Source of the DNA: Penicillus capitatus | Lineage: Eukaryota; Plantae; Chlorophyta | NCBI GenBank assembly: GCA_965649825.1 | Contig: OZ287696.1 | Span: 291,101 to 355,100 of the forward strand | DNA: 64,000 nucleotides | Direction: 5' to 3' | In this document: positions 16,138-57,788 of the stretch, piece after piece | Numbering within the stretch: the first letter of the stretch is position 1 | Layout: every line of letters begins with the position of its first letter | Translations under genes and position numbers: made by a program | The notes under the pieces: generated by a model | What the model was told of the DNA's origin: nothing | Database searches by the model: none | Seen by the model: only the letters and a program-made list of their open reading frames with translations

Positions 16138-16439
16138 TGGAGACACAGAAAGGCCGTTTGAGCGACAATGAACGGTCGAGACAGGGAATGATAGTCACAT
16201 CATCGATCTGCTCGCATCTTAGCAGCAACCTCTCTAGTATCTCATCATCTGACACGACCGCACTCTTCTTGCTATAAGCTCTCTCCGTCATCTTGACGAA
16301 CAGGGTAGGGCTGTCACAAAGAAACTGCCAAGGGGCAAGAGGATCAATCCTGATGCGCTGACACAACATACTTCAGTCGTAGCTTCTGCGTAGCAAACGA
16401 CAAATCTTTCCGTCTACATTTCTATATGACGATAGAGCA

Positions 16440-19711: not shown

Positions 19712-19967
19712 GGGCCCTTTCTGAATCCTTTAGTTTATCATAAATTTATTGCTGCAGTCGGACGAGAATCAAAAGTTTCATTCTTCGAATGGCATCAGTG
19801 TTTCTGTCATCTTCTGCATCTGATGCTAACTGACGGCAGAAAGAATTTATTTGCCTCAACCGTTCAGGAACAGACACTGCAAAACATAGATCACTTATCT
19901 CTGCTCACAATTGTCAATCAATGTAATGAATGTACTGTCTGTACCTTCTAGTTGATGCATCGTCCCT

Positions 19968-20583: not shown

Positions 20584-20615
20584 TTGTGTGCGACGAAAGT
20601 CTGCCTCATCGGCTG

Positions 20616-32221: not shown

Positions 32222-32239
32222 GACGATGGTGTACCTGAA

Positions 32240-36092: not shown

Positions 36093-36174
36093 AAGCCAAA
36101 TCGATCAGCTTCTTCTGCTGTTATACGCGCATTAAGCCAAATCGATCAGCTTCTTCTGCTGTTATACGCGCATT
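36093..36174. repeat. Perfect 41-bp tandem duplication spanning the ZNFX1-A stop codon
   Basis: aagccaaatcgatcagcttcttctgctgttatacgcgcatt at 36093-36133 and 36134-36174. Confidence 0.97.
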
Positions 36175-39100
36175 TCCAGAAGACAGCTGGTGATGGCCGC
36201 CGCCAATAGTCGCTCCACAATCTGGGCATCGACTTTGTTCCATTGCTCCGCCACATTCGCCAATGATATACCAATGACCGTTGGGGCATCGATACAAATG
36301 GCCACGAGTTTGATTCACACTTATACGTGGATCAACAGCAACAACTGTCCGCAGAAGTCTAATCTGATCTTCGATGGGAAGTCGATCAAAACGCTGCTTC
36401 AAAACTTGCAACTCGGATTGCTGCCTTCTTATCTTCTCTCTCTGCACGGGCCACAGTATCGTTAGAAGAAGCGCTGGAGGTTGTACACATTCGTGCTATA
36501 CCCACCTCAGCAGGAGTTCTGCAAACCTCCAGTGCCCTTGATATTCCCTCCTCAATGTTCCGCAGAATTGTGCTTTGGAATTCTTTGACTTTGTCACAGT
36601 GAAAGGGAGAATCTGTCGTTAAGGCATTAGCCAGCATACAACTCGCCGCTGTTGTGACAAATTTCAGCATCTCCAGATAGACTTGGGCAGAATCTGTAAA
36701 TGCATCTGTCATCCTCTTGTTGCTCAACGACTCCTGCGCAGCTTTGATCAGGTTTTTTGCATCCAAATCAACCTTTCGGATCATCGCAAGACCGTTGTTA
36801 ACAATTGACCGATATGATTCAACCTACCAAGAAACAACATACATGCACAAAAGACAGTATATAAGCGATCTATACCGCTTGTCGAGAAAAAGCAGAGTTC
36901 ACGTTTCTGTGAACTTCCAGAGTTCTAATGGCGTAATGCTGACATTGAAACCAGAGTCTTCGACAGTAGACGACTCCAATATAAGACCTGCACGGTGTTT
37001 GGCATGATGGCATATATACAGAAATGACAGAAATTACGCGCAGGCTCTAGACGGATCAGGTTTTGGAACTGTCAGACGACTGAGTTCCATTTCAATCTCT
37101 TCTTGTGACAATTTCTCTTCCTTCGCCTTTCCGAGTATCGCAGAACGAATCTTCTTGTAGATATCAATCGACGGGGTGCTACAACACAACAATGCGCCGC
37201 CTGAAATATCGAGCATGGAATACCGCTGACACATGGCAATGAGTTCCTGATAGTCTCTTGCTCCAGCCATGACCTTTTTCTCAATGTTCTTAAGATTTTG
37301 TATTATTGACAGATTCTGATTCTTATCCGACACATGGGGTTCCGTATCTTTAAGCTGCTGCGCAACTTGTGCGATTTCAGAATTCAGTCGAGCTTGACTT
37401 CGAGAGAACTGCTCGTAAAAAACTCTTTCCATGAGATCGATAGCAGTCTTGTTGATGATGCGCCCGTATCGACGAACAAGTACAATGGGCTTTCTACACA
37501 ACATGCATGTCTTTCTGTTTTCAAACTCAAGCAGTCGCTCTCCAAAGATCGGACTCCTCCATCTGCAACGCGTATTCTGAAATCAGTGCGTCAGAAGGAA
37601 AACTACCTTCCGAATCTGTCTTGCCGGTAGAATTCTGCGATGCCCATGTGGCCGTCGAGCGTGGACGTCAGGAATGCATGTCCGCAGCTGAGCACGATCA
37701 ATGGGTCCTGCGTGAGTTCCTCGTCTGTGAGCTCCCCGTATTTTCGGAACATGATCATGTCCACATCCTTGAAGGCATGACACGATACACAAAACTGTCC
37801 ACATTTGAAGGGCGACTGACCATATTCTTGACTCTGGGGCCAGCATGCACAAGACAGAATTCGGGTGAAGGGCATTCCTCTCCGCAAAGAGATGGACAGC
37901 GACAGCCACATGCAAGTATCTTGTTGCAACGTTGATCGCAAGGAAGTCGGTTGCATGGCGCTCCACATGGCAGATCGCATTCGCCTTCATGCTCGCATTC
38001 CCACGAGCACGGCTCGGCGCATGAGACGCAAGGTTCTGAACATGTCTTGTCACAGCCACGTCTGCGATGCTCGCAGACCACTGAGCATTTCTCCTTGCAT
38101 GGTCCGCAGTCTTGACGGTCTACAGGCGGTATTGAGAGTGGATAGTCGAGCTCAGCAATCTCACCTGGGTGACACTTCTCTCTGCATTCGTGTCCACATA
38201 GAAGTTTCTTGCCGCACAGGGATTGACACCTTCCATGTTCGATCAAGTGAGCATTTGAGTCTGACAGTACAAAATCCGGATTCTTCTTGAGTGTTCGGTC
38301 GAGGCATCCGCCACACTTCCTTTCGCATACGTGGCCGCAACCTTCCATTACGCGGTGGCATCGTTCAGTACATCGAGTTGGGTTATCCAGGAATGTGGCC
38401 TCTTGGTGACACGGCACCATGATCTCATGTCCGCACATCGGCATGCGAACATGGATTTGCTCGGTGCAGTTCTTGGGGTCCTTGCGGAAATTCTCTGCCC
38501 AAGAGCATCTCACATGATAACTGTGGCCATGACGGCACCCCTCCACGCCAACATCAACGTACTCATCGCAGAGAATTCCATTCGGATTGGCCGTTCTGCC
38601 AGAGACACGCTGTCACTAGAGGAAACTGGATCGCTGACGTACTCGAAGCATGGAACATTGGTCTTGACATGACCGCAGGGTAGCTCGATGCTGACGGGGA
38701 TGGCACAGTCGTTCTCCTTGTGGTCCCGGTTCGTCATATGACACCGTCTGCCAAAAAGACAGGCAATCGAGAAAGATCCCGCGTCATTAGCCGATATACC
38801 GTCTGCAGATATGACCACACGGCAACTGCCGGCCGCACGGTTCCTGGCAACCCCCGTCCCCGACGAGGAGATCGAAATGCCTCCAATCTGAGATCTCCGT
38901 TATGTTCTCCGGATGGTTATGGCATTGCAACTGAAACATGAGTACGATAGGACGCATCATCGACAAAACAGTCAGACTACCTTCAACTCGGTTCCGACGC
39001 AACCCTCGTCTCTCATCAGACGCAAGACGTCCCTCCATACTGTGTTCTTGCTGTAGGCTTCCAGGGATTCACTGTTTCCCAGAATATACATTCCTTCCTT

Positions 39101-42100
39101 TGCTCTCGAGAGCATGACGTTGATCCGGTTCTTGATTCCGACGAACCCGATATGTCCTTGTTTTTGATTCCGGACGAGGGACAATATGACGATCTTTGCC
39201 TCTTCTCCCTGAGATCCGAATGAGCCTTGTTCAGTCTCATGATGGATGACAGGCAGCTTACTTGAAAGTTGTCAATAGTTGCCAGACGCACACATGACTG
39301 CACAGAACGATTTGCATGCTTTGGCTCATTCGTCGCGTTCTGACTTCGACGACCACGATCTTCGCTGGACCCTTCTCCCGGAGTCTCTGGATCACCTAGA
39401 AGAACAAGAAGCCGACATGCGAACCTGATACAACAGAATGATGGATTCACCAGTTTCTCCATAGTCGGCTAGGAGTTCCTCATCTTTTGCATCGATTCGC
39501 ATTCGAAGGGAAACGCCTGTGTGCTTGCGGAGCTGCAGAAGCTGCCCTACGTATGGCGTCACGATGGCGATGTCATCTAAAGACAAAGTCAATCACAGAA
39601 TCGTCATGCAGGAAACACACCTGGTTTGAAGCATCCCTGCTTCAACAAGTAAATGGCGAGGTGGATAGCAAACTTTGCTTCGAAGACGTTACTCTTTGAC
39701 TTGGCATCAGCCATGCCTCCTTCTGGATGGTCATGATCGAAGAAGAACAATGCCTTTTCCATTCCAGGAACGGCTGATGGATACTGAGTCACAGAAACGT
39801 GATCTTTCAGATCAGGGTATATCGTCGAACGGATGAGCCTAAGATGACAACATCATCCGGAGACAACAGCATTTGAAAGAGGACCTTGAGAATGAAGGAC
39901 GCATTCTTCGCTGGCTGCTCAGTGTGACGTGGCTAACACTGTTCTCGGTGATGAGTCTCTCAAAGAGGGAGACATCGAGATTGAATCCTGACTCCGAATG
40001 AACTTGCAGCAAGAAGTTATCCACTTTCGGGCGAAGTTGTTCATGGTCTCCAATCATAATCAGCTGCTGAGTGCTTGAGGAGAGCGATGTCAGGACATGG
40101 GCTTCCAGAACTTCAGCTGCCTCTTCGAGAATCACGATCTTCGGTCGGAGGCCAGCCAGGAGTTTTTGATGCATTGCCACATACGTCGTTGTCATCCCTA
40201 CTACGGACGCTGATCTCAAACACTCCAGATCAGAATATCTCTTTAATTCTGCAAACTCCTCCATGTATCGTCTGTATTCTCCCATTAATCTTTGAATGGT
40301 GTTGACAGCTGCTGTTCTCGCCTCTTGAGCCCAGTACTCGTACAGTGTCCTGTGTTCTCGGGGTGAGATGGCATTGAAGTCTTCCATTTGCAGCAATGCC
40401 TCCACGGGAAGAACATTATAGTGCGCGGCATTCTGCGTTTCGACATCGCTACAATTGGAATACATACGGCACCAAGATGTCCATGCCGACGGAAGGGTCT
40501 CCGGTTCATCGTCACCATCGCTGATGGAACTGCCGCTTGCAAGGAAATCAATAAACTGCGGACAGTGTGCCAAAATGATATCCTTGACCTGGTGCCATTT
40601 AAGCAAGCTAAATGGTCGCAAATCTTAGAGGTGTCAAAACGATAGGCGAGATGATGTACCTTTGGCTGGATTTTTTGAGACAGGAATCCATGCTTTGTAT
40701 TCTCTTTTCGAGCTCTGGCATCTTTTTCGTCAACAGCTCAAAGCCTCTGGATCCGGTACCGCGTTTTTGTTTGTTCTTGAGATTGTACGGTCCCATTTCT
40801 TCGCATCGACTGCTTCCTCCAAGGCGAACGATGTTATCAATGCCAGCATGAATCAAACCAAGCAAGAACTGATCCAGCGCATGATTTGTGAAGCAAACGC
40901 ATAGGATCGGACTGACAGAATCGCCCGGCTTTCTAACTACTGGAGGGCGGTTGACAGGAATGCGGCGATTGGCGTCTTCAAAGGTGAGAAGAGCACGAAC
41001 GATCTGTATTCCGACATACGTCTTTCCTGTTGTTAGCAAATGTCTGACCTCAACATGCATGAAATAAACAAGCAAACGCACCTGTTCCTGGAGGGCCCTG
41101 AATCAAAGCGACCTCCTGTGTGAGCGCCGCTTTCAATGCTTCTGCCTGACATTTGTCAAGGGTGGTCCGCCTAAGGACTTCTTCCAGTGGAAAATGATCA
41201 GGATGGGCCGCATTGAACTTTGTCATCCTGCGACAAATGTCCATTTTCGCTCGTCAAAAGTGTAAGTGATAGAAATACCACGATCGGGAAGTGCGTCCGC
41301 CCCGATCCAGGAATTTCAGATCGAAACTGCCTCCACTCTCTGCATATTCGGGTATGGCTACTATCCGTCTGCCCGTGATTCGCTGCTGTTCAGAATACAA
41401 TATCGTCGATGGTCTGCCTTTGTATGGATGCATCACCTGTGGAGGCTGAGCTATGATGTGAGCAAGAGGAATAGGAGCCGTCTTCAGGGCGTTCAAGATT
41501 GGCTCGAATGCGAAGAAGCTTGGACCTGCTTGCAACATCACCACTTCTGAGACCTGTAGCTCTTCTTCTTCCTTGAGTAAGAGAGTAATGAGTTTCTCAT
41601 TGTAAGGCTGCGGGATCGATCTGAAGACATCTCCTTACGAAATTAGGGCCAGTGAATGACGAACCTGACTCCAAGACTTGGACGAGATTGCGCTAAATCG
41701 TCTGCATCACGTTCGCCGATAACTCCAAAGACGATACTGGGACGAGGTGTATTTTCTGGAAGCCAATACAAGCAGATCAGTGAACCATGAGACAATCGTC
41801 TTGTTTTCTTCCAGAAAGCCAATTTATCTCGTTTTGCCGATTCCTTGACGACATCCGGTTCATCGCATTCAATCTGTTGACGTATTGAAAAACGATCCGA
41901 GTGTTAATGAAACGATAGATGCACCTTATAATAGACTCCGGAGTGCCGGTTCGCGTCCATCGAAACGACGCGTGCATGTCTGTAAATGTCCATGACAACG
42001 TCCCTGGACTCAAAGCCTTCAGCAACTGTCTTTTTTTGACGATCCTGTCATCCGAATGCTGTCAAGAAGGCAACATTCAATTGGCAGCTTAGCGTCACCA

Positions 42101-43736
42101 GCTTTTTGAGAGTTTTGATTCCTCCATTCTCCATGAAAGTGCGAATTGCGGTTTGAATATCTGAAACCAAATTGTGACGTAGTAAGCGGAAGTGCAGGTC
42201 CCGGTGGGCTGCCACACTACCAGGAGGCATATGTACAACAGATCCAGCCCTGTGATTGTGTGACATTCACTTTTTCCAAAAAAGAATGACATACTTGTTT
42301 GGTGGCAGATACGGGGGAGTATCGCACAGGACTTCTTCTTCGGTCGGGGCAATCTGAATTCGTGCAATGTCTTCGTGGTCGTTGTCATGCCTTGGTCCTT
42401 GAGGATGCAATGAACCTGATAACAGCACTTACTTGATTCACACGTGCAGATGATTCATCTTACCAGGCGGTTGAGCGTAGAGAAGGGTTTTTGTTTTCGT
42501 CGTGGGTTTTTGTGTGGGACGACGGGTCTTTTCAAGCTGCTTTGCTATCTTGTCACTCATCTCATTTCTCCCTGTCTTTTGTTTTAAGAGACTAATTCAA
42601 ATACGACATCAGCAGGAAATTTAAGAGGCTGAATGCTTGCTTCGAAAACTCGGAGATGTGTTGTGCAAACAGTCGATGTTGTCTGTCGGAATGAGAAAAA
42701 TCGATGGGCACACGACGCATCATTCTCTCGACATACGGATAGACGTCCGTAATATCTCGGAGAAAGCGATCATCAAATCTTCGCAGGAGCTCCAGCAAGA
42801 ACAGCACAAATGGATGTACGATTTCCATCCAATTGTCAATTTCTGGGCCAGAGCTTTGCTGGGTCGATGAGTTTGATGAGAAGCTCAGGAAGGAAAGAAG
42901 AGATCCCAAGCCGCTTCTCGGTTCTTCGACAGGCAGGAGTTCTTCCAGAACTGGATGTAGCTCTGCCCACTGAAAAGATTGCCCCAGGGCCTGCAGAAAT
43001 GTGTTCGCACAATTCTGCAGCGCTGCTGTCAAAATCAAAGGAGATGTAGCCAGCTTCAAAAAGGGAACAAAAGTGCGAAGAAAAGACACCTGGTACAACA
43101 ACTCATCGTCAACCAGAATGCGTACGACAGCTGCAGACTTGTCCATTCGTTGTGGCTTGTCGAAGCACAAATCGCTTCGGTCTGCCAAACAGGTTGCGCA
43201 GAATCTCGACGCCGGTCGCACAACCGAGTGTCTCTAGAACCGAACATTCTCCTGATCCGTCGTTGCTTCTGAGGCAGCGCTCCGTGCATTGAATAAACAT
43301 TTCGACTTGCCTCGTCGATACATTCTCCATCCGCTTACCAACCAGTATGCTGCCGAAAGGCTTTTTAGCATTGAGACGGCCCTTTGCGAGCTTACGTGAA
43401 TACGGCGAGATGGTCCGTTTCGTCGTTGACGGATCCGCTCAGGACTTCAGCTTCACGGGCGTGTAAGAAGCGGCAGTTGTCGCCGTAATCACATCTCCCC
43501 GTTCTGCTGTAGAACTTGCAAATTTCCTTTTTGTGAGACCGCCTATTCTCATTGGCATCTTTTTTTGCTCTCTCCACTTTTTCCGGATCCGAAGTGTCGT
43601 GCGAGAATTTGCACGACGCGCCAAACTTGCACGTTCCTGTTCTTGCGAAGTGAGGACATAAACGGCGCGTGGATGTTCCTTAAAAGAGAAAAACTACACA
43701 ACTTCGACAAACACGAGGTTTACCTCTTTGAGACAT
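36121..43736 (-). CDS. ZNFX1: ZNFX1-like protein A: 2xCCCH, UPF1/NAM7-type SF1 helicase, NF-X1 zinc fingers, RING-like segment, RZ finger
   Basis: CPHFARTGTCKFGASCKFSH and CKFYSRTGRCDYGDNCRFLH. QGPPGTG|KTYVG, CFTNHALDQFL, ILEEAAEVLEAH, IGDHEQLRP, QRRMRP, TIDNFQ|GEE and NRINVMLSRAK. C-x-H-x-C NF-X1 repeats, LSCGH...CMLCRKPI, and HLYRCPNGHWYIIGECG..CPDCGATIGG. Confidence 0.93.
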
Positions 43737-43974
43737 GTCCGAGACGGCGGATGTCCCCAACGGAAGAAGCTGTAATGGCTTGAAAGAAGCTAGCTGTCTG
43801 GTTTTGTCGTCGAACACCGAGGTCAGGTTTATGAAACAACCAAAGCGAGGTTATAAGAAGCACGCGTAGATCTTCAATTTCCTTTGTGCCTTTGTCACAT
43901 CCGTCGTGCGCAGATGCCATTGCATGCGTGTTGAGCACGGCGTCATGTCAATCTTCGCCTTTTAGATATCATCA

Positions 43975-44052
43975 AACGTGTCCTTCCCAACAGCGTCACA
44001 TCCACCCTAGCCGCCGTAGTACAAATGTCTCGTCGGACATTACAGAAACTGC
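43975..44052. repeat. 78-bp dispersed noncoding element, copy 1
   Basis: 72/78 identical to 60784-60861, in the same orientation. Confidence 0.93.
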
Positions 44053-44080
44053 GTCTCGCCGTCGAACAACGTGATCAACA

Positions 44081-47000
44081 ATGTCAAACGTATCAAACGT
44101 AACAGACACGCACAACGACGAAGCTGCCTTCTCCCACAATCACATGGAGCTCACCACAGAGTTCGATCCGGAAAAGCTCGAGAATGTTCGCAAGTGGGTC
44201 AAAGCACAGACGATCGCCAGTCCACCTTCGACAAATGTCAAGAGCAACATTCTGTCTCTCGACGACTGTCAACGTTCTGCCTCTCAATCTTCGGCATCGC
44301 GTTCGAATTTCGAGTCAGAGAGCGAGAGACAACGGAGCAAAGGGACCGAATCCGAATTCACGAAGATGTCCAGCTCCGGTCAGAACTCGGAAAAAACTGG
44401 AGGGACAACGAGTTCCGATCAAAGCTCTTCGTCGTCGTTCGATTTCGAGAAGTTCTCAGAAGAGGATCGCGACAGCCGCAGTGCCTCTTCGCCGACCTCT
44501 TTCGTCTCCGCTGAAGAGCCGCATCAGGAAAAATCGCTCGTCCCCTGTTCTCTGTCCTACAAATCTGACAACTCTTCGCGTCGCTCTGCCGTTTCCGACT
44601 CCTTGTCGCAGCTGAATGGTCGCTTAGTCGACATGGGGTATGGTCCCATGGACTTGGATACGTCAACAGGTCAGCTGCCTGCCGTTCGTTTCTGTGAACA
44701 CAAGTGTTGAATTTCGCGCAGTTGAATCTGTCGGAAAGAAGCTTCGCGTTGTCCTGATGGACGTATGGCAGAAGAGTGAGACGTCGCGTCTGTTAATGGA
44801 ACAGACGAACAGATGGAAGACGGAAGAGCGAGCGCTAACAGCCAAGATCAGGTGTGTCGGCAGGGACACGACCCTTTGCGAACGCCCAGAGCCTTTCAGG
44901 TCTCTCGAGACGAAGCTGACCGAAAACGAGTCCGCTGGACGCACTGCCGAGCAGATGCGTCTCAAGGAAAGGCAGAATGCCGACCGCACCATGAACAGCC
45001 TGCAAGAGGCAAAGAAGACACTCGAGACGGAAAACAGCAAACTGAACCACGCATGCGCTTTGCTGAAACGCAAGCAGAGGTACGGTTGCGGAGACTGGAT
45101 TTGTGGCCGCAGAGGCGGCGGGTCTCCGTTTAGCGAAATGCATCGGCTGCTCGAGGAGGCGAAAAAGGAGGCCGGCGACAAGGCGAATGAGATAGAGACG
45201 CTTAGAGCGCGCTCAAGGGAACTGGTCGATCAAGAGAGGCACCACGACCGAAAACGCGACGAGATGCAGAGACACTCCAAGGCACTTGAGAACAAACTGA
45301 GGTCTGTCCTTGTGCCTCTGGCGAGATTTGAGATTCCATTCTACCGAACATCAGGTTAAGGGACAGCGAGCTGTCGAAACTGAGAATGCAACACGAGAGT
45401 TCATCGAAAGAGCAGGAGGTTCTCAAACGAAGGCTCGCCGAATGCGAAAAGGCGCTCAGAGAACAGGAACGGGAGAACCTGACTCTCAAGCAAACGCTTC
45501 AGTCAGACGTTCGATCACAGAATGCCGAAAAGGCATTGACCGCGGCAACAGATGAAATCAAGGCGCTCAAGGCACCTTCTCGAACGCCGCCTATCGGAAC
45601 GCATCTGCGATGGTCTGGTAGGAGAACCTGTCAATGGAGAGGAGCAAAAGGAACTCGCTGGATCACAAATGCGAGAAGCTGGCGATGGATCTCAAGAGGA
45701 ACCAGCAACAAGCGAAGGAGCGCGAGTCGAAATGTCAAGATCAAGAGCATAAGGCGCGACATTCCTGCAACAGAACGGTCCTGAGCTGTTTGTTCTCGGC
45801 AGATCTATGAGTTGGAGATCGAGGTCAAGAGACAAAAGCTGGCAGAGACAGCGAGCACTGTGCGCGCCGCGGACAACGAAAAATCACAGAGAATGCAGGA
45901 GCTGAGAAAGCAAGTCGCCAGAGTCGAATCTGAGAAGAGAGAACTGCAGCAATCCGTTCACGGCCTGTCGCAGAAATGCAACTTCCTGCAGAAGGAGACG
46001 CTTCAGTTGGACACCAAAAGATTTCAAGCCGAGAAGAGAGTCCAGGAGTGCACATCCGAGATTACGCGTCTCTCCGACGATCTCGCCGACAAGGGCTATG
46101 GGCTCAAGTCCGATTCCCCGCCGTGCTCCGTTCTTCCTGCGGTGATACTTGCTGCTCAGGGAGACGGCCAACAGGCTTTCGGAGACAGAGAAGTCGTTGG
46201 CGAGCAGCGAGAGGCAGATGCTTGTACAGTCGGAGGACATGAAAGGGACGGCGATAGCAAACAGCACTCTCCAAAGGGCGAACGCCAACTTGGTGACGGG
46301 AAAGATCTTCCTGGAGCACCGAGTGACGGAGTTGGAAGCGACATGCCAGAGACTCCGAGAGAAACTGCGCGAGAAAGTCTCCAAAGAAGAGAAGAGTATA
46401 GGGCGCGAGAGAGATACCTACCGCAGACTCAAGCACCGAGCACAGACGGAGAACTGTGGGACGGCTGTGCAGACGGGCCAGTAACGAGACGCGTGTGGGT
46501 GCACTAGGTGGAAGGAGCGATCTACGTCGCGAAGATGTCTTTCGGTTCTGCGAGAAGAGGATTCAAGATCTCACGGAGGAGATCAAGTCTCTTCAAGAGA
46601 ACAACAAGAAATGCGAATTCCAGATGAAATCGCTCGAGAATGGGCTCGTCGAATATCGCAGAATGGAAGCAGCCCTGTCTCTGCCACCTGATAAGTTGAA
46701 AGTGAGGTTCCAACTGCTGAGGTCGAATCCTCGCGCGCTCGGTTTTCCCTGCAGAACCGTCTGAGATTGGCGGAGAAGAGCATTACAGAGCTGACGACGA
46801 AGTTGATGATGCATAGAGAAGGAAAGACAGGAGAGATGCAGCAGTTGAAGTCGGAGAAAGAGAACCTCGAGATGCGGCTTTCGGAGCACAAACAGACGAT
46901 ACACAGGCTGCAACAGAAGCTGCATCAGACGCCTCCCGAACTCGCCGCGGCGCAGAAACAAGTCAAATCGACCGGAGAATCCCATGTCACAAGATTGTCT

Positions 47001-47536
47001 ATCCAAGTTGTTTAGATCAAGGCGCTGCGCGACAAGGTCAAAACGCAGAGCCAGCGACATCCGGTGGCCCAGCATCAGCAGATCGGCCAATGGACGGGAA
47101 GTGCCATTCCGAAGACGGGCAGCTCCGTGGACAGAATTCCGAGACCGCAGATCGAGAAAATTCTGAAGGTCCGAAGGAGCACAACGCCGTGGAAGATTGA
47201 CACGTGCGACTGCAGAGTCTGTGTCTGGTGATGGAGATCGACGATCCCGCTCTGCTGGCCGGACGGGCTGCGAAGCTGCAGAAGATCGTCGCATCGCTTC
47301 CAAGGATCCAGAGATTCGTTTCGGAGGTCTGCGAGATCGTTCTGTGTCACGGCGCCGATCTCATCCCCTATCATCTCAAACCGCCTTCTTCCAAAAGTAC
47401 GCCATCGAAGCCTCACCTCCGTCACTGCCCATCGCAGGCACCGTTCATCAAGAAGATGTTTCGGTCTTGGTGCCGTCTATCCTTAAGTATTGGATCCATC
47501 AGTTTTCGTAATACGACCCACGCACAGCATCGTTAA
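44081..47536 (+). CDS. Large coiled-coil protein with Ser-rich N-terminus, multi-exon (family not identified)
   Basis: A chain of plus-strand ORFs rich in E/K/R/L/Q heptads (44081-44710, 44640-45359, 45386-45784, 45812-46507 etc.), ending KLQKIVASLPRIQRFVSEVCEIV. Confidence 0.7.
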
Positions 47537-47572
47537 ATTCTTGTCAGTCGGATCTCGACAGAGAAATCAGAT

Positions 47573-49989
47573 CTAGAGCGTCCTGTTGTCGAGATTCAGA
47601 GAATCCTTCTTTTCGAGAATCTCGGAAAGCTTTCTTTTCAGTTTCTCTTTTGTCTTGGTCTGTTCGTCTGAATCTTGTGATCCATCCGTGTTTGAACCGG
47701 ACATCTTGCTCGTTTCACGGTCGGAAAAACTCTCATCTCTGGAATCGCTGTCGGGCTTCTTTGCCTCCCTCTCTATGTCCGTGATCTTGGTGCCGCGATC
47801 GCGATGACCGTCTTTTGATAGATGTCTCCTAAACCGTGGCACGAAGATTGCGGAAGGGTGGAACAATGCTCCAAGGAAGTGACCTGTGTGTTCTCCTGTG
47901 GCCTTTCTCCGGACTTGCACTTCTGTAAACGCGATCTCTGTTTGCCGATGACCTCAGCGAGGGCATTGGATCTCTGTGTCTTCCTAAAGACCAACACGAC
48001 GTGCATTCATCCGCGCGCATTGTTTCATCGACAAACCTCTGCTGGACGGAAATCGGTCCCCGGGTGGCGATTGAGGAGATCTGTAGGCGTACCCGCGTCT
48101 GCCTCTCTGCCTGTCGTCGGAAGGAAATCGACGATCACTAGGAAATCTTACGTAGCCTCTCGAGTACTCATCTCTTCGTCTGCGCCCTTCCTCTGGGCGA
48201 TGCTTAGGACGATGAGGACCAGACATGCGGTGGCGACGGGCCGTTGGGGATGGAGTTCTTCTCGGGGGCCGCCGAGTCCTATCACAAAACGCATCATCTT
48301 CATCAGGAAAGGCGTACATACTACCGAACGGACGCACTCTGTCAGCAAAACATCAACGAACGTGTTCGCTCATTAATGTCGTACTCACCCTCTGGTTCTT
48401 CTCTCGGGCTCTATGTGGCGATTGTTGCGCACAGGTGGTGTGCGCGTCCTGGGAGTGGCCGGCTTGGGAATGGGAGATGTTGTGGATAGGGGTGCTCCCG
48501 GCGATGGACGCGTGGAGGGAGATGGCGTTCCCTCTCTGGGATCTGGTGTCGAACTCATACGGTTTCTCGAACGAGGTGACGGAGACTTCGTCGGTGGAGA
48601 TCGCGAGGACACGTGCGGTTCGATGCTACGAGACTTTCGATCGTGATGCTCTCGTCTCCTTGCCAGAGGCAGACTGGAGCAGGAGAGAGATAAGAAACTT
48701 CTGAGAGGAAACGCAAGTGGGAGACTTGTAAGGTCGCGGAGGTGGACTGCTGTGCCGCGACTGAGGCGGCGAGCGACTCAACGAGTGATCTACTGGCTTC
48801 ACTCTCCTGTCGCGCTCCTCTCTGCCAGAGCACAGAGTCACAGAGCGATCGTGCAGAAGGGTGAGCGTGTCGCACCTGTGTTTTCTCTCTTTGGATGGCC
48901 GGCGGCGATTCCCGTCCAGCTTTGGAGATCTAGAACGCCGTGCTCTGTTTCTTTCCCAACTGGGACTCCTGTCGGGGGATCTGGATCTTCGATGCGGTTT
49001 TCTCGACGGGCGGGATTTTACATCATGTCGTCTTCTTGGAGATCTGGACCGCGAGGCAGGACGTCCCTTTGGCGTTCTTCGACGTTTCTGTGGAGGAGAG
49101 TAGCTGCGATCGCGCCATCGATCTCTGCGCTGTCTTCTGACATGATCCGGTCCTCCGCTGAATCGACTTCCCTTCTCTCTAAACGGTGGAAGTGGCCCTC
49201 TTTGAGGCATGGGCTCCGTTCTGGGAGGCGGCACCCATCTCTTGTTCTTGTCCTTCTTTAGCTGAGGTTCCTTCTGGGCGTCCTCTTTGGCGTCCAGTTC
49301 CGCTGACTCCATTTCGAGTTTTGCTTTCTTTCTCTGTTCCTCTATCGACTCCTGAACAGAAGGGCGTGAGAAGATGACGTGACGAAACGGCGAGAGACAA
49401 TGATGGTCGACTGCTGTTCTATCTTTTGGCGCACTTCCTCGGCTTTGGCGTCCAAAATCTGTTGTGGAATTCCGGTCTCGTTGGCTGCTGCGCTTGCGAG
49501 CAGAGTCCATAGCTCCTGCAGCCTCGCCCACGTGTATCATTTTTGCTCGTGCATTTCGAGCCTCACTTTCATGAAGAGTCCAGTGTTCTTCTCCAAAAAT
49601 GGCATCAGCTCTAGATACAACTCCTTCGGATTGAGGTCCTGGCAGAACAGGGCAGAATGAGGGGTGTAAAGGGAGTGACACGTTTGTTGGTACGTGCAGT
49701 TCTTCGAGTCTGTTGTGGATGAACTGAATCAGCACCTCGTCCTCGACTCCGAGAAGCTCCGTCACACGTTTCGCCGTCCACTCTCGAATCACCGCCCAAT
49801 TCACACGCGCGTAATCGACGACGACGTCCAGCTCCTTCGGAAATTTCTTCGTCTTGAGCATTCGCTTTTGCTTACTGCCAGACAAAACGGCCCGGCGATG
49901 AGAGCGCTGTGTGGGATACGCGAGTCACACTTGACGAAGCGCGCATCTTGACTCGCCGAGACACCGCGGAAGCCGCCAATGCCCGACAT
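47573..49989 (-). CDS. SRRM1: PWI-domain Ser/Arg-rich splicing coactivator (SRm160/SRRM1-like)
   Basis: MSGIGGFRGVSASQDARF.NKQKRML, REWTAKRVTELLGVEDEVLIQFI, LMPFLEKNTGLFMK|ELWTLL, and a long RS-rich tail. Confidence 0.9.
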
Positions 49990-50161
49990 CGATGTCGTTA
50001 ATGCACCCGAACAGAAGTTCCAAAGCTTAAATGCTCTGACGCGACGCACTGTTACGCGCTTTTACGACTCCCACTGTCGTCACTGGTAGAAGTCGTCGAC
50101 CAACACCAAAAACCTCGACGCCTTCTCGAAAGCCGAGCCTTTCGCGTCTCTTATCGCCTGG

Positions 50162-53100
50162 ATGCGTCGACACGGCAAGCGTCTTTACCTCCGGAACGTT
50201 GTCGTCGTTCAATGGGCGGTCATAGAGGAGCGAACGGATAGGATCTGTTCACACTTCGCCAGGACTGGATGGTGCAAGTTTGGGTCAACGTGCCGGTTCT
50301 CCCACGACACTTCGGATGCAAAGAGCGTCTCGCAAGCTTTAAGAGAATCGGACGACAAAAGAAGCGCGCGGACGGATCGTGTGTGCAGCTTTTTTTCGCG
50401 AACTGGACACTGCCGCTTTGGCGACAGATGCCGCTTCGTCCACGTGCGCGAGCAGGAAGTGCTTGCGGGTGTCGAGAACGACGTGGATCCTCATCCTCTC
50501 TTCATGTACGGCCGCCTCCGTCTTGACCGATTTCGTCCAATGCGTTTTCAGGTTGCTGGCTGAACGCAGAATGGCCAACTGCACGGCGAAACAGGTGCAG
50601 ACGTTCGTGCGCTACGCCGAGAACTGTCTGGTCAAGGACATGGGTTCGATGGAATCGTCCGTGCTCGAAACACTCGGCAGCGACGTCGGTGTCGAAATCT
50701 TGCGCAACCTTTTCGGCCCGACAAAGAACTTCGTCCTCAAGCAAACCACCTCCAACGCCCAGGTGCGTGACTCCTGTCGACCTGATGTTGGAAACGTGTC
50801 GTGTGCCAGACGTCTTTTCTTCACACGTTCATCCCGGTGCTGAGGCTGGCGACGTCGTCGCTCATTCTGACAGCGGCGCGCCAGACCTACGTCAACACCT
50901 TCTTGCAGGCACTGGGGCACTCTTTTCAATGGGTTTCGCTCCGTGCGGTGCTCGACGAACTTGTGTCCAGCGATCGCGCTCCTTCGCTTACGGAGGTCGA
51001 AGGCTCTTCGGTGAGCACGTCTGCTGTCGGCTTCATACTCTCAGCATTGTCGGTCCGTCGCCGTAGAGCGACGAATCGAGTGATTGGCTCGATATACTGC
51101 GCCCTTTCCTGGCCTTCGTATCGGAGATTCTGCAGAGATTTGATGCAATGTTCTTGGCGGAGATCGCAGAGCTGCATCCGTTTCTGTGCAGAGTGAAAGA
51201 GATCGTGAATCCAGATCTCCGTTCCCCCGATCGCAGATTTCGTCAATTCTCGAAGGATTTTGCAGAACTGACCAAGTACCGCACGTCCTTTTGCATCTTG
51301 CGTTCTTCTCGATCGTTGCGCCAGTTCTCTTGCGCAAAAGACTGGGAAGCAGCAGTTGAAGATAGACACTTCACAGAAACTGGAGAAACTTAACCTCGAC
51401 AGGAGAACCGCGAAGGAATCCATGATCGTAGTATATTCCCAGCCACCAGGTAAGGCGTGACTGTACTTGGTACACGGGTCAAACTTCTTCAAGGTCTTCT
51501 TCGACCGGAGGGGCAAAGACATGACAATGACCATGCGGATATTGCGCAAATCAATGTGGCGCCTACAGAAGCAGAGGTTTTATGCACCGTTCCGCCTTAT
51601 CTGCCACCCAACAAGCATGCTCTTCCTCCACTCTTTCTGGTCCAATGTCTTTTCGGTAGGGCCGGGACGGTGGTTCACCTCCCGGAGGCAAGTGTCTCTG
51701 CACATCGGGATTTGCATTTCCGTTTGCTCCGTTTCAATCTCGTCTCTGACATCCAGACCGCCATTCGCCACTTTACGGAATGCGGAGGGATCAAGGCGCT
51801 CAAAAAGATGGTCCAATTCACCCCACCTCTGTCTCTTCAACCGAGTCGGTTTCGCATTTCCAGGACAGACAGAAGAAAAGGGTGTCGGAAGGGCTAGACT
51901 TCAGAGAAGTCACCTTGGACATCTACAGACGTGTAGAGATCCAGGCAATCGGAGCCAACCAAAGGTCTGGCGTGTACTACAAGGTCACATCGTTGTCGAT
52001 ACTGGTGACTTGCCTCCTCACGGTCCACCTTCGCAGATCGCGTTCGACGAGCCAGACTTCGTGAGAAAGATGCCAGTCGCCAGAAAACCTCTGTTCTGGC
52101 AGAGGACGCACAGACTGGCCCACGGATCCTTAGCATGTCTGTGGTGGCAAGTGGATGACGAAGAGGAGCCATCAGTTGTGTTTGGCGCTGTCAGCGAACG
52201 CGACGAAGGAGACCTCATGCAATCTCGCCCTTCACTGGGCATCAGGTCCGCCTTCTTGACTCTCCTGTCTCTGAAACGGTTTCCCAGAGCGATCCCCGTT
52301 CCTTACAACGAGAAGCTGGCATCCCTCTTGTTCAAAGAGGACCAGGGCGCGCGGACATCAGAAGTCGTTCTGCTGCAAGCCGGTCCGAGCTTCTTCGCCT
52401 TCGAACCCATTTTGAAAGCGCTCAAGAAAGCGTCCATTCCGTTGGAACACATTATCACGCAGCCTCCTCCCAAGGTGGTAGCGATTCAGAACAGCAGCAC
52501 GAACTAACTGTATCCAGTGCGAAATCTAGCAGAAGGAGGACACTTGTGGCACCAAACGAGAACTGGCCCTTCCTGAGTATGCCGAGACAGGCGGAACGTT
52601 CAATCTCAGCTTCCTCTGCGAGGATAATCCGCCGAGGCACCCCAAGTGCACGGCCGATTCGAACGGAACTGAGGCGTAGAGATGTGGTTCTGTAGTCTGA
52701 TGAGCATCGATCCCTCGAATCCAGACAGCTTTCCCGTGGACGAACTCGTGCAATGCACGACACTTGACCGATGCCAGGCAGACGCTGTCAAGGCAGCATT
52801 GACAAGAGAGATGGCACTGATCCAGGGTCCTCCAGGAACAGGCAAAGATCCGCCTGTTTCTCGACAGCCGTACGTTAGTTGTCTGCAGGGAAGACGTATG
52901 TTGGCATCCAGATTGTCCGGGCTCTGTTGTCTTTCAAGAAAGCGCAGGAGGATCGATTGCCCGTTCCGCACTTTCCTTTTCGTCGGGAAGTCACATCGCC
53001 CCTGGGCCCGATTCTCTGCGTCTGCTTCACCAACCATGCCCTGGATCAGTTTCTCCTGGGCCTTGTGGAGGCCGGAATCGAGAATATTGTGCGGGTTGGC

Positions 53101-56100
53101 GGCAACAGCAGAACTGAGAAGCTGGCCCCATACAACCTCCGCAACCTGCACAAAGTGGGCTTGGGGCCGAGGGGATATGAACTCAGGAAAGAGATCATCC
53201 CGGAGGCCGAGAAGAGGATAAACCGACTCGACAACGATCTCCGACGTTCCCGAGAAAGGTCGTCTTTCTTCATTGCTCGAGATTTCAGTTCGTTGCTTTT
53301 GCAGTTACGTTTCCTGGTATCGAGTCGAGCCCTTGGTAAACCTGTCCTGTCCCAGCTTCGTCGAGTGCTTGGAAGCTGCGATTGGGTACGATGAGTACGT
53401 ACATGACAGGCAAACTGCCTGGTTAGAATGGTGCCGTTCGTACGCCAATGGTTTCGATGAGTGGTATCATCCACCGCAGACCACAAATCGCACCGTCGAC
53501 GAGCTGCTCGAGGCAGACGACTTCTGGGACTTGACAGAGGCAGAACACCGAAGATTCTATGAACACTGGGAGAAGCTGGCGAGAGACACAGCCAAAAAGG
53601 GCATTGAGAGGCGGCTCAATCGCTATGAGTCATTGGTCGGAGAGTACACGCAGCTGGAAACTGCCTCGAATCTGACGTGCCTGCTCAAGGCCTCCGTCGT
53701 TGGCATGACAACGACATACGTTGCCAAAAACCAGAACCTTCTCGCGGGACTGATGCCAAAAATCGTGATTCTGGAAGAGGCAGCCGAGGTGCTGGAAGCC
53801 CATGTTCTGACATCTCTCTCGTCCAATACGCAGCAGCTCATCATGATCGGCGATCACGAACAGCTCCGTCCAAAAGTCAACAACTATATCCTGCAAGCAC
53901 ATTCTGGATGCGGATTCGATCTGGATGTCTCCATGTTCGAAAGGCTCATCACCGACAACAACATCCCGTATGTCACACTTCAGATTCAGAGGCGGATGCG
54001 TCCGCAGTTCTCAAGGTGACCCTTTCTTTTCGTTATTGATGCACGGCGTCTCTCTGCAGACTGATCCGTTCGTCCATCTATCCGAAGTTGGAGGATCACG
54101 TTTCGGTGACAAGCTATCCAGCCGAGGTGCCTGGAATGGCGAAGACGTTGTTCTTTTTCGACCACGATCACCAAGAGAGGGGCCTGCAAGATGCCAAGTC
54201 CAAGAGCAACGAATTTGAAGCGCTGTTCGCTATCGAACTGGCGCTGTACCTTCTCAAACAGGACTGCTTCAAATCAGGTTTTGACTCGCTGCTTTGCAAA
54301 GTGTTCTCACGCCGTCCGCCATTGCAGGGGATATCGCAATTATCACTCCGTACGTCGGGCAGCTCTTGACATTGAAGAAGCACACGGCAGACGTTTCTCT
54401 TGTCATGCAGATCGATGACAAGGACAGAGAACTCCTCGAGAACTATGCTGAGACTGGTGAGCTAAGGAGCACCTCCGCCTGACCGCATTCTCTTGCGGAA
54501 TACGTGTAGACGAGACGAATGTCCCAGCAGAAGGGGCTCAAGCGGATGGCCGATCCGAAGAAAGGAAAGTCGAAGAGATGCCCAGAATCGATACCAAGAT
54601 GAACAGATGCGTTCGATTGGCCACGATCGACAACTTTCAAGCAAAGAACCGCGGATGTCGAAGGAGGACATCCAGTTCTCTTCGGTTTTCTAGGGAGAGG
54701 AGGCAAAGATTGTGATTCTGTCCCTGGTCAGAAATGAGAAGGAAGGACACATCGGGTTCGTCGGAATCAAGAACCGGATCAACGTCATGCTCTCCAGAGC
54801 GAAGGAAGGGATGTACATTCTGGGAAACTGCGAATCCCTGGAAGCCTACAGCAGGAACACGATGTGGAGAGATGTCCTGGCAATGATGAGAGAAGAGGGA
54901 TGTGTGGGCTCAGAACTCGAGGTGCAACTGAGCAATAATTGCTTGACAGTCCCTCTGCATCTGCTTGCTCTTTCTGTTTCAGCTGAAATGCCAGAACCAT
55001 CCAGAATGCATCACCAAGATCAAGCACTGGAGAGACTTTGATCTCTTGGCCGGAGACGGCGGCTGCCAAGCTCCCTGCAATCACCAGCTGTCATGCGGCC
55101 ATGTCTGCAGAAGGTGTGTGTACACCATGCAGAATGAATGACCAGTCTGCACGTCACCGTGCGTTTGCTCTTTAGGCGATGCCACATCGTCAACAAGGAC
55201 CACAAAGAAAACGACTGCTCTTTGCTTGTCAACGTCGAACTGCCTTGCGGACACGTCAAAACAAACATTCCCTGCCACGAGTATGCTCTTCCACTCAAGT
55301 GTACGAGAGACGGCCCTTTACTACAGGGCCGTGGAGCCGAGTAAGATTCTCTGTCAAGAGTATCTCGAAGTGGGTGTCCAAGGCTGTCAGCACGATCACA
55401 AGTACCGCGTTCGGTGTCACATGGCCGACAATTTCTCGAAGGACCCCGAAAGCTGCATCCACCATGTCCGCGTGCGCATGCCAATCTGCGGACACGAGAT
55501 CGAAGTGCCCTGCCACCAAGAACGCATCGCGATCAAAAACCCAGAGAGATGCAACCAGCGATGCCACAAGGATCTCGGGAACTGCGGACACACCTGTGAG
55601 AGAAGATGCGGAGACTGCATCAGTCGAACACTGAAGAAGATCCCGGGATTTGTGCTGTCGTCCTCAAACGCACACCTGCTGGATCACGGAGTTTGCCAGT
55701 CACTGTGCAACAAGACTCTTCTCTGCGGCCATCCGTGCAGAGAGAAATGCCATGCAGGTGAGATTGAATGATCAGCACTCTGTGCTTCGATACGTCTCTC
55801 TGCAGATCGAGATCACTGTGGACTGTGTCAGGAGAGGTGCTCTGTCGTTTGCGAGCATCGAAAAAGGTGCCACAAGAGATGCTCAGACCCCTGCGTCTCG
55901 TGCGCCGAGCCATGCTCGTGGAATTGCGAGCATCAAGGCGCATGCGATCTTCCATGTGGGGCGCCATGCAATCGGCTGCCGTGTGACCGTCGCTGCGACA
56001 AGCTGCTCACGTGTGGCTGTCGATGTCCATCTCTCTGTGGAGAGGAATGCCCCTCGCAACGATTCTGCCACAAGTGCGGTGTTCCGAGCGTCAAAGACAT

Positions 56101-57788
56101 GGTCGAAACCCACATGCGTGCATGTACTCTAAGCAATCGTGTCGTGCCTTCCAGGAGGTGGACATGACCATGTTCCGGAGGTATGGCGAGCTCACGGACG
56201 AGGAGCTCACTCAGGACCCATTGATCGTGCTCAGCTGCGGACATGCATTCCTGACGTCCACGCTCGATGGCCACATGGGCATCACAGAATTCTACCAGCA
56301 AGACAGATTCGGAAGGTCTATCGCCTTCCTTCGCAGAAATCGTGAAAACATTCTGTTGCAGGTGGACGCGGCCTGTGTTCGGCGAACGTCTGCGCATGTT
56401 TGACGACAGAAAGCTGTGTATCATCTGCAGAGCGCCGATTGTTTTCGTTCGACGCTACGGTCGAATCATCAACAAATCGGCAATAGATCTGATGGAGAGG
56501 GTCTTCTTCCAACACTTCGAGTCGAAATTCGGCAAACTGAAACTCAGACTGGACAAAACTGCGAACGAACTGGACACTCTCGGAAGTTCAAGGACCGATA
56601 GAGACAACAGAAACCTCATCAAAAACATTCAGTCCGTTAGGGATCGGATCAACGCCATTGCCTCTGAGTATCTCCAAATGGTGGATGATTCTGGCAAGTG
56701 CGTGCTGTCATGTCGCCTGTCCCCATCGAAAGATTGCTGATGTAACACGTAGAACGCCTTCACTAGATATCTATCAGAAGATCCGATCTTCTATTTTGGG
56801 CAAGAGCATCGAAGAAGAGCTGTCACCAGAGGAGACAGCAGAAAAACTCGAGTCCGTAACGGTCCCGGTTCCAGACAACACCAGGGCGTGCAGGTGATGG
56901 ACGGGGTTTCTCTGCGGTCTCATTCTTCTTGTCTTAGAGCCTTGGTGGCTCACATCTGCTGCCAGAAGATGTGGCTTCGATGCCAGACTCGTGCTCTTGT
57001 AGCCTTGAAGAGTAGTTCTTCTTATGGAAAGGCCAGGGAAGATTTCAAAGTCTTGTCGATACGCAGAGTTCTTTCGCATGTCGCCTCGTTTTCTATCGTA
57101 TAGATGAACGGAATTCGCAAGACCATAAAGGGAGGAAGCAAAAGAATACATGAGTGTCAGGACGAAATCGACAAGACACTCGAGGCCGCGGAGAAAACGC
57201 GCAGTGCCACCAGGGTAGTGGACGCCTGCAAAGGAGCTCTTCAGATTCATCTGGAGTCCATTCGATTTACGATCGAGATAAGTGGACACGAGGTGGCCAG
57301 AGCGATGAACAAAAACACTTTCCAGTTAGAAGACACTGGGAAACAACAGCAAACGGCCACGATAAGAAAAGCAGAGAAGCTCATTGAGATAGCACTCAAT
57401 GTCTGCACAAGTGTTGAACAGGTAGGCCCAATTGTTATTTCGCCACTAAGAGGGTAATGCGCAGAAGTCCGAGATACTCAGCATCAAAACCGAATTTGAG
57501 AAAGCGAAGCAGATTCTAACGGAGATGACGACCGAGGAGAAGCTCAAGCTGCTCATGAGAGTCATCATCAACGATCCGCGCATCCAGACGAATGAACCCA
57601 GAGGGCATATCTACCGATGCCCTAATGGACATTACTATATCATTGGCGAATGTGGAGGTGCAAATCAGGGAGGTGTATGCCCTGATTGCGGAGCTCGCAT
57701 TGGAGGCAGTGGCTTGACGAACGGTCACATGTTGGCCCCTGACAACACACAAATCACTGTCGAAGAGACCAGCCTCATGAACCGTTAA
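50162..57788 (+). CDS. ZNFX1: ZNFX1-like protein B: same architecture as A
   Basis: CSHFARTGWCKFGSTCRFSH and CSFFSRTGHCRFGDRCRFVH. QGPPGTG|KTYVG, CFTNHALDQFL, ILEEAAEVLEAH, IGDHEQLRP, TIDNFQ|GEE and NRINVMLSRAK. NF-X1 repeats, LSCGH..CIICRAPI, and HIYRCPNGHYYIIGECG..CPDCGARIGG. Confidence 0.93.

Follow-up and report, generated by a model that had tools for sequence, protein, structure and literature searches.

A divergent pair of predicted ZNFX1-family RNA helicase and ubiquitin-ligase genes in a Bryopsidales-like green alga

ZNFX1 has only recently been shown to combine an RNA helicase with a two-headed ubiquitin ligase in human innate immunity. The structure of the human protein displays an EEAA Walker B motif, an RNA-stacking tyrosine, a motif VI arginine and a rigid zinc-finger stalk that holds two cysteines mutated in patients (bioRxiv 10.1101/2025.10.14.682297). 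Its ubiquitin-ligase (E3) parts are a Miz-type RING-like domain and an RZ finger with C-H-C-C zinc ligands and a catalytic Cys/His pair; the protein self-associates, its N-terminal armadillo domain dimerises, and RNA-stimulated ATPase and ubiquitin-ligase activity are known for the human ZNFX1 protein only (bioRxiv 10.1101/2025.10.14.682297). Helicase orthologs, namely C. elegans ZNFX-1 and S. pombe Hrr1/Neurospora SAD-3, have been reported in small-RNA amplification, and in RNA interference (RNAi) both ZNFX-1 and Hrr1 work together with RNA-dependent RNA polymerases (PMC9276528). The C. elegans protein is without an RZ finger (bioRxiv 10.1101/2025.10.14.682297). Outside animals, only the RNAi factor Hrr1 of fission yeast came up in the literature, and searches on the ZNFX1 family in green algae (including ZNFX1 with Chlamydomonas or algae) returned no relevant paper, in keeping with the original prediction for this DNA, which knew of no described function in chlorophytes. 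Here we describe two ZNFX1-like genes, A and B, in a 64-kb stretch of contig OZ287696.1 (positions 291,101 to 355,100; the whole stretch is hereafter called the window). We consider it probable that they are two intact, divergent ZNFX1-family helicase/ligase paralogs that were duplicated within their algal lineage, are under purifying selection and would link RNA to ubiquitin by the mechanism proposed below.

The two genes, in window coordinates, are:

36121..43736, minus strand: gene A, ZNFX1-like coding sequence of 28 exons and 2088 aa (start codon 43736-43734, stop codon 36123-36121), joined-exon model
50162..57788, plus strand: gene B, ZNFX1-like coding sequence of 29 exons and 2074 aa (stop codon 57786-57788), joined-exon model

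The original prediction had described two genes of about 7.6 kb on opposite strands, 6.4 kb apart, with identical domain order, matching intron positions and intact helicase motifs, and closer inspection bears out each of these features. The coding sequences span 7,616 bp (A) and 7,627 bp (B), and their start codons lie 6,425 bp apart in a head-to-head, divergent arrangement with two other genes between them. The stop-to-stop open reading frame (ORF) fragments of the two loci (minus strand, 36.1-43.7 kb; plus strand, 50.2-57.8 kb) are collinear over their full length, with per-fragment BLASTP E values down to 1e-86, and the joined proteins are 56.7% identical across 2,063 aligned residues, with no internal stop in either model. 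Both encode, in the same order, two zf-CCCH fingers, a ZNFX1 domain, AAA_11, AAA_12, a Cys-rich NFX1-type region and an RZ finger, and the Pfam matches to zf-CCCH, ZNFX1, AAA_11, AAA_12 and RZ all lie above the gathering cut-offs in A and B. The 27 introns of A (44-64 nt) are all GT-AG, whereas four of the 28 in B (42-64 nt) are GC-AG; 24 of the 27 introns of A share both alignment column and phase with an intron of B, the remaining three are off by 1-6 columns, and B has one extra. Likewise intact in both genes are the helicase motifs GPPGTGKT, ILEEAAE, IGDHEQLRP, QRRMRP, TIDNFQGEE and NRINVMLSRAK.

Splice sites were placed jointly in A and B by choosing the donor/acceptor pair that gave an open frame and the best protein alignment, and doubtful junctions were compared with orthologous DNA. 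The 5' exon of A (43724-43736) was read directly from the sequence, as was the 5' end of B; the models are predictions, with close alternative junctions at B 51011-51066, 52475-52538 and 56681-56732. Two other intron structures were discarded. Ultra-short introns of ~20 nt, resembling those of ciliates or nucleomorphs, had been suspected from small gaps between high-scoring segment pairs and were rejected since the placed donors and acceptors give 42-64 nt, and a single intron of 220-246 nt at the last-but-two junction was rejected since a middle exon of 112 nt is conserved in the orthologs. At the nucleotide level the two loci resemble each other in exons only, so that no recent segmental duplication is involved, and the 64-kb window, with a GC content of ~50%, yielded no further ZNFX1-like copies beyond A and B.

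The family identity of the pair is carried by its helicase region, which consists of:

41667..41993, minus strand: ZNFX1 domain (helicase 1B insertion) of A, PF25396 at 28.4 bits against a cut-off of 27, aligning to 9q9z
51909..52243, plus strand: ZNFX1 domain of B, PF25396 at 33.0 bits against a cut-off of 27
39071..41160, minus strand: superfamily 1 (SF1) helicase core of A (AAA_11 and AAA_12) with motifs I-VI and EEAA Walker B, PF13086 3.3e-24 and PF13087 1.8e-36
52763..54831, plus strand: SF1 helicase core of B with motifs I-VI and EEAA Walker B, PF13086 7.8e-25 and PF13087 1.2e-36

A sequence search of all PDB chains, run with A only (B is 57% identical to it), returned human ZNFX1 (9q9z) as the best match with an E value of 2.3e-117 and 396 bits, followed by UPF1/NAM7 at ~1e-28 (3.7e-29), SEN1 at 1e-23, and Aquarius and IGHMBP2 at ~1e-20. 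The alignment to 9q9z falls into three blocks that take in the 1B region and the two RecA lobes and continue into the first NFX1-type fingers. Residues singled out in the ZNFX1 paper are kept within these blocks: the Walker B is EEAA, the position of Y1043 is aromatic (F in A, Y in B), motif VI has its Arg (LSRAK), and the stalk has both Cys that are mutated in patients. About 200 residues between motifs Ia and II are unaligned. The Pfam ZNFX1-domain scores, at 28.4 (A) and 33.0 (B), exceed their cut-off by a narrow margin. Given that the AAA_11/AAA_12 core is common to all of these families, A and B might instead represent another UPF1-like clade (UPF1, SEN1, MOV10/SDE3 or Aquarius) with a superficial likeness to ZNFX1; however, the ZNFX1 match is ~90 orders of magnitude better than those to UPF1 and SEN1 and reaches into the 1B domain and the zinc-finger stalk, and both genes possess the Pfam ZNFX1 and RZ domains. 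Moreover, the zinc-binding (CH) family of UPF1 was absent among Pfam matches at E≤0.01, the UPF1 match being confined to the helicase core, and no MOV10/SDE3-named chain appeared at E≤0.001, which is weak evidence in a sequence search of solved structures only. We give this alternative virtually no chance of being correct and, on sequence grounds, place A and B in the ZNFX1 family as originally predicted.

Downstream of the helicase, both genes encode a stalk and two candidate E3 modules:

37854..38930, minus strand: NFX1-type Cys/His-rich zinc-finger stalk of A, its first fingers aligning to 9q9z, 59-78% identical to B
54983..56068, plus strand: NFX1-type zinc-finger stalk of B, collinear with that of A
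37448..37764, minus strand: RING-like (Miz-type) domain of A, C-x-H...C-x-x-C, from homolog alignment, AlphaFold2 model and Foldseek
56158..56476, plus strand: RING-like (Miz-type) domain of B, invariant zinc ligands present in the homolog alignment
36190..36288, minus strand: RZ finger of A with zinc ligands C,H,C,C, catalytic Cys and His at +9, PF20173 3.3e-22
57618..57728, plus strand: RZ finger of B with zinc ligands and catalytic Cys present and a 4-residue insertion, PF20173 6e-17

No Pfam model matched the stalk region of A or B. Between the stalk and the RZ finger, a segment of 145 residues is kept in 25 algal and fungal homologs with C63, H65, C108 and C111 invariant. AlphaFold2 modelled the A segment with a predicted local distance difference test score (pLDDT) of 91.5, and all of the top 50 Foldseek matches of this model in the PDB are RING E3 domains (e.g. 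APC11, RNF4, RBX1 and TRIM21). As modelled, the segment of A and B fits the Miz-type domain described for human ZNFX1, a likeness drawn by description, as the PDB chain does not include the human Miz segment. A, B, RNF213 and ZNFX1 all have the RZ spacing C-x3-H-x6-C-x8-C-x2-C, and the RZ fingers of A and B align to that of RNF213 with E values of 4e-09 (A) and 1.2e-05 (B), the B alignment ending before its insertion. Together, the RZ zinc ligands and catalytic Cys and the RING-like domain, each found in both genes, agree with the E3-ligase modules of the original prediction.

The RZ active site varies among the paralogs and their relatives, among which A' and B' denote the orthologs of A and B in a related alga and C and C' a third paralog. 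In B and B', the putative general-base His stands at +13, pushed there from +9 by the 4-residue insertion in the RZ loop, whereas a His at +9 is found in A, A', C', a tandem gene of a more distant alga (L006_g1), Ostreobium and fungi. The +9 position is Tyr in C (L003) and in Caulerpa g6783, and the RZ finger is degenerate in Caulerpa g6793. A further difference lies at the stalk end (A 37850-37870 versus B 56060-56080), where A and both Caulerpa proteins carry C-L-(V/I)-H (C-L-V-H in A) and B, Ostreobium and most fungal homologs carry C-x-x-C, which may constitute a Cys-to-His change of zinc ligand.

At their N termini, the two proteins begin with paired CCCH fingers:

43461..43658, minus strand: tandem CCCH fingers of A (C-x8-C-x5-C-x3-H twice, 26-aa linker), Pfam zf-CCCH E value 7.9e-19
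50246..50443, plus strand: tandem CCCH fingers of B, Pfam zf-CCCH 3.2e-17

The fingers of A match TTP/TIS11d-type tandem fingers in the PDB (9y10 at 5.6e-12, 1m9o and 1rgo). A and B both have a linker of 26 residues, and in each a TTP-like lead-in precedes the second finger only. The region between the CCCH fingers and the helicase is predicted to be all-helical, with a poor single-exon model (pLDDT 49.7).

To what extent both copies are retained was assessed from the ratio of nonsynonymous to synonymous divergence (dN/dS) over ~2,000 codons of each gene. We obtained a dN/dS of 0.147 for A/A' at a synonymous divergence (dS) of 0.76 and of 0.134 for B/B' at a dS of 0.64, and in a sliding analysis no 120-codon window exceeded 0.33. 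These values indicate that A and B are both kept by purifying selection along their whole length. With both orthologs present at the syntenic locus of the related alga and dN/dS at 0.13-0.15, the description of a retained, diverged duplicate pair in the original prediction stands.

Gene B has unusual splice donors at four introns:

50175..50225, plus strand: putative GC-AG intron 1 of B, in frame and readable through, at the same position and phase as the first intron of A; GC donor kept in B'
51615..51659, plus strand: GC-AG intron of B, in frame; GT-AG at the corresponding site of A by donor comparison
52842..52888, plus strand: GC-AG intron of B inside the Walker A codons, splicing needed for an intact P-loop; GT in all seven other paralogs/orthologs
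54641..54693, plus strand: GC-AG intron of B inside motif V, splicing obligatory, by donor comparison

GC donors thus occur in 4 of 28 introns in B as opposed to 0 of 27 in A, all four are conserved in B', and the donor is GT in every other paralog or ortholog at the sites that could be compared. Decay of one copy, or its lack of transcription, would be in line with the need of B for at least two non-canonical GC donors to yield an intact helicase. It is difficult to reconcile, however, with frames that are open over ~2,080 codons in both genes, with the retention of both orthologs at dN/dS of 0.13-0.15 and dS of 0.64-0.76, or with GC donors that are themselves conserved across species, and we judge it very improbable.

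The two paralogs share one segment of exceptional similarity:

37607..37767, minus strand: exon of A in a gene-conversion tract, 91-96% nucleotide identity to the B exon
56155..56315, plus strand: partner exon of B in the tract, by dS and sliding identity

Over nearly all of their length, A and B are saturated for synonymous change. The exception is A residues 1561-1680, a stretch that holds the final fingers of the stalk and half of the RING-like domain, the half nearer the stalk; dS(A,B) is 0.69 there, and the value for dS(A',B') in the sister alga is 0.10. Sliding nucleotide identity delimits a tract of ~150 nt at 91-96% between A and B (A 37620-37763) and one of ~500 nt at 92-99%, spanning an intron, between A' and B' (L002 ~12448-12950 versus L004). 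The low dS and high-identity tracts in both pairs show that gene conversion between the paralogs is recurrent and continuing, that it has taken place separately in each of the two species and that it is restricted to the zinc-finger/RING-like segment. It is because of this tract that the DNA at B 56136-56333 and A 37589-37786 is conserved enough for three frames to have matched significantly.

These features raise the question of whether the pair is sub- or neofunctionalized, with A as the canonical enzyme and B as a regulated or catalytically altered one that could co-assemble with A. Such a division would suit the insertion that displaces the RZ general-base His in B and B', the four GC-AG introns of B and B' where other paralogs have GT, the C-L-V-H of A versus the C-x-x-C of B at the stalk end, the gene conversion that keeps the RING-like segments of A and B alike and the self-association of human ZNFX1, but B has lost neither zinc ligands nor the catalytic Cys and still has a His nearby, its dN/dS of 0.134 is as low as that of A, the promoter is not shared, and no interaction surface was identified in the N-terminal region. 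On balance we regard it as unlikely.

The origin of the pair was traced through its relatives. The closest full-length relatives of A are Caulerpa lentillifera g6783.t1 (46% identity, 94% of the query) and g6793.t1 (42%) and Ostreobium quekettii CAD7696268.1 (33%), with further relatives in Closterium, a Volvox fragment and many fungal proteins. A second marker of the host is found elsewhere in the window:

1590-2732: intronless glutamine synthetase gene, ~33 kb from gene A

Among named proteins, its closest relatives all come from Ulvophyceae, namely Caulerpa lentillifera (74% and 73%), Ostreobium quekettii (70%), Acetabularia (70%) and Neomeris (67%), and the other green algae in the comparison reach 62-68%. 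Both the glutamine synthetase and the ZNFX1-like genes being closest to Caulerpa/Ostreobium, the green-algal host named in the original prediction is supported and, judging from these sequences, is a Bryopsidales-like ulvophyte near those genera, with A and B belonging to its nuclear genome. A fungal origin, considered on account of the short introns and 50% GC, and an alveolate origin, considered because the first named helicase matches were from dinoflagellates, were both rejected since glutamine synthetase and the full-length search point to Ulvophyceae. In Caulerpa, g6783 and g6793 are ~ten gene models apart and within 16 gene models of the glutamine synthetase g6799. Linkage of glutamine synthetase with ZNFX1-like genes seems conserved between the window alga and Caulerpa lentillifera, as judged from gene numbering only.

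A related alga (ERZ26696514, ctg303805, a 1.39-Mb contig at 184x) carries A' and B' head-to-head at the syntenic locus (L002, L004), with a PWI gene adjoining B' and Ank/U-box genes downstream. The spacing between A' and B' is ~26.5 kb, as opposed to 6.4 kb in the window, and LINE-like (long interspersed nuclear element) ORFs encoding endonuclease and reverse transcriptase lie between them (L002 1-2601). The same alga possesses the third paralog C' (L005) on a separate contig of the same coverage, and its ortholog C is found in a second, related alga from the metagenome to which the window also belongs (L003, ERZ25074695 ctg340592_344x), at ~8-fold the coverage of the window contig. For the L003 alga versus the ERZ26696514 alga, dS between C and C' is 0.3-0.5, compared with 0.5-1.0 between A or B and its ortholog. 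A more distant relative, L006 (Logan SRR33785046), harbors two same-strand, tandem ZNFX1-like genes (7280-14375 and 14594-20704) that adjoin a PWI gene, with cobW upstream and without an inverted copy like gene A.

Neighbor-joining trees were built on 258-290 gap-free columns and anchored on the Caulerpa and on the Ostreobium proteins; query-anchored identities on A are biased towards A. Bootstrap support was 100% for each of A+A', B+B' and C+C' and 74-85% for A+C, and the lineage of the window genes grouped with the L006 tandem pair at 97-100%, the two Caulerpa genes appearing as sisters at 81-88%. By these trees, A and B were duplicated within this algal lineage, after the split from Caulerpa and before that from the sister alga, and the A/B/C split is likewise placed before the separation of window alga and sister alga. 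With the Caulerpa pair grouping as sisters, and the window lineage with the tandem pair, the family appears to have duplicated independently in several lineages of siphonous green algae, which are giant multinucleate single cells.

Given the similarity of A and B to human ZNFX1, a working mechanism can be proposed. Each predicted protein runs from the TTP-type CCCH fingers through the all-helical region, the SF1 helicase (with 1B, the Ia-II insertion and EEAA), the NFX1 stalk, the RING-like domain and a helical linker to the RZ finger. By extension from the human protein, single-stranded RNA would bind in the groove that separates the RecA lobes, and a second contact with single-stranded RNA could plausibly come from the CCCH fingers. 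ATP hydrolysis and translocation in the 5'-3' direction would be triggered by the bound RNA. A charged ubiquitin-conjugating enzyme (E2) would be recruited by the RING-like domain, and the RZ Cys/His pair would take part in ubiquitin transfer, so that recognition of RNA would lead to ubiquitin being attached to the enzyme and to targets in its vicinity. More tentatively, the biological job of the pair may be surveillance of foreign or aberrant RNA such as viruses, transposons or small-RNA targets, and the four GC-AG introns and the 4-residue RZ-loop insertion of B might set it apart from A in regulation or E3 chemistry.

An antiviral or silencing role for A and B is weakly suggested by homology, and nothing in the present data decides between the two. 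The original interpretation is supported in part; for its antiviral or silencing system, the sequence adds no support beyond homology to ZNFX1, and no 120-codon window rises above a dN/dS of 0.33. Should the proteins instead serve endogenous small-RNA amplification or heterochromatin-type silencing, as Hrr1 and ZNFX-1 do, rather than antiviral defense, the paralogs might belong to different small-RNA pathways or compartments. The partnership of ZNFX-1 and Hrr1 with RNA-dependent RNA polymerases in RNAi (PMC9276528) fits this idea, and purifying selection over the full length of A and B would be expected of a housekeeping silencing factor at least as much as of an arms-race gene; C. elegans ZNFX-1, however, is without the RZ finger, whereas A and B keep the full RING-like and RZ end of the mammalian immune protein. 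We hold such a role to be possible, if somewhat unlikely.

Several observations weigh against our interpretation of A and B as intact helicase/ligase paralogs with a ZNFX1-type mechanism and should be set beside the evidence above. The exon models of both genes are predictions from sequence. For the RING-like domain the Foldseek statistics are weak, with a best E value of 0.03 and a probability of up to 0.96, and on sequence grounds the acidic plug helix could not be pinpointed in the 1C insertion of the helicase. The armadillo dimerization domain of human ZNFX1 was not recognized in the N-terminal helical region of A or B (profile search against 9q9z/PDB; model pLDDT 49.7), which is the domain that dimerizes in the human protein, and the heteromer suggested in the original prediction is not supported. 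Bootstrap support for A+B+C was only 61-72% on 258-290 columns, where gene conversion blurs part of the signal. Lastly, at the resolution of pairwise dN/dS there is no sign in the sequences of an arms race or of fast adaptive change.

A bolder possibility is that siphonous algae run an expanded, repeatedly duplicated system of cell-autonomous immunity built on ZNFX1-type RNA-sensing ubiquitin ligases, whose paralogs would differ in RZ chemistry (His at +9, displaced, or Tyr) and in control by GC-AG splicing, with gene conversion keeping the RING-like module compatible for mixed polymers. If this were true, the full CCCH-helicase-stalk-Miz-RZ machine would date to or before the plant-opisthokont split. 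We view the proposal as speculative and quite unlikely to hold as a whole.

Between A and B lie two further, unrelated genes:

44081..46800 (end approximate), plus strand: intervening gene with coiled-coil-like ORFs, its ATG ~345 bp from the ATG of A
48629..49861, minus strand: intervening PWI-domain gene, Pfam PWI 5.2e-07, its first ATG ~300 bp from the ATG of B

The former had no Pfam match, and each of the two is head-to-head with A or B at about 300-345 bp. Because these two genes lie between them, A and B share no promoter, and the 'module' of the original prediction is not supported. Adjacency of the PWI gene and B is conserved in L004 and L006. Just downstream of B is an ankyrin-repeat and U-box E3 gene (59549-60400, minus strand), of which the related alga has two or three in a row (L004 16645-21092). 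Other genes in the window, at 5694-6877, 7722-8120, 22302-23399, 24265-25215, 31028-32560 and 32669-33118, are of ordinary housekeeping types: a PdxS-like and an ENTH-like gene, recognized by eye from their translations, and, as identified by Pfam, a CN-hydrolase, a BRAP2-like zf-UBP/RING gene, a family-4 glycosyltransferase and cobW. None of these listed genes has a relation to defense or RNA silencing.

As they stand, these results amount to a well-founded annotation and not to a new mechanism, and uncharacterized orthologs are already public for Caulerpa, Ostreobium, Closterium and Volvox. Their value is that A and B place the whole ZNFX1-type machine, including its RING-like and RZ parts, in green algae, with an extra TTP-type RNA-binding head. 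Comparison with them can help to tell which residues are truly invariant and supplies natural variants of the RZ active site, and the genes form a candidate set for work on RNA surveillance and virus interaction in Caulerpa, Ostreobium and Bryopsis.

Set against known systems, the resemblance of A and B to TTP/TIS11 proteins concerns the two C-x8-C-x5-C-x3-H fingers, the second with its TTP-like lead-in. Members of that family have a fixed linker of 18 residues and a YKTEL-type lead-in before both fingers, whereas A and B have the 26-aa linker and bear the fingers as an N-terminal appendage of a 2,080-aa enzyme. The likeness to RNF213 extends to the RZ finger only, with aligned zinc ligands and catalytic Cys and, for A, also the catalytic His; the remainder of RNF213, a dynein-like AAA+ E3, is unrelated. 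Among the small-RNA factors, ZNFX-1 and Hrr1/SAD-3 did not come back in the sequence searches made here. S. pombe Hrr1 is a much shorter, helicase-only protein, and C. elegans ZNFX-1 differs from A and B, which keep their RING-like and RZ end, in being without the RZ finger.

Fungal helicases annotated as 'C3H1-type / RZ-type domain-containing' (Wilcoxina, Sphaerobolus, Mycena and Pyricularia) exhibit the same overall architecture at 29-35% identity, although several have a DEA Walker B instead of EEAA and some have one or zero CCCH fingers. The Caulerpa and Ostreobium proteins, which are uncharacterized database entries, are the closest full-length relatives, and Caulerpa likewise has two copies near glutamine synthetase; its pair groups together (81-88%), however, so the duplication looks independent, and its RZ fingers differ in being degenerate in g6793 and in having Tyr for His in g6783. 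The architecture of CCCH fingers, helicase, stalk, RING-like domain and RZ finger is therefore, by sequence comparison, not special to the window alga but is found in Caulerpa, Ostreobium, Closterium and many fungi. Human ZNFX1 differs in being without the two TTP-type CCCH fingers with which A and B start, and identity to it is moderate and absent over the 1C insertion, the armadillo domain being unrecognized in A and B. What A and B share with the human protein is an SF1 helicase in which a 1B barrel is combined with a long insertion ahead of motif II and a Walker B that reads EEAA, together with an NFX1-type stalk, a RING-like (Miz-type) domain and an RZ finger of the same ligand spacing with its catalytic Cys.

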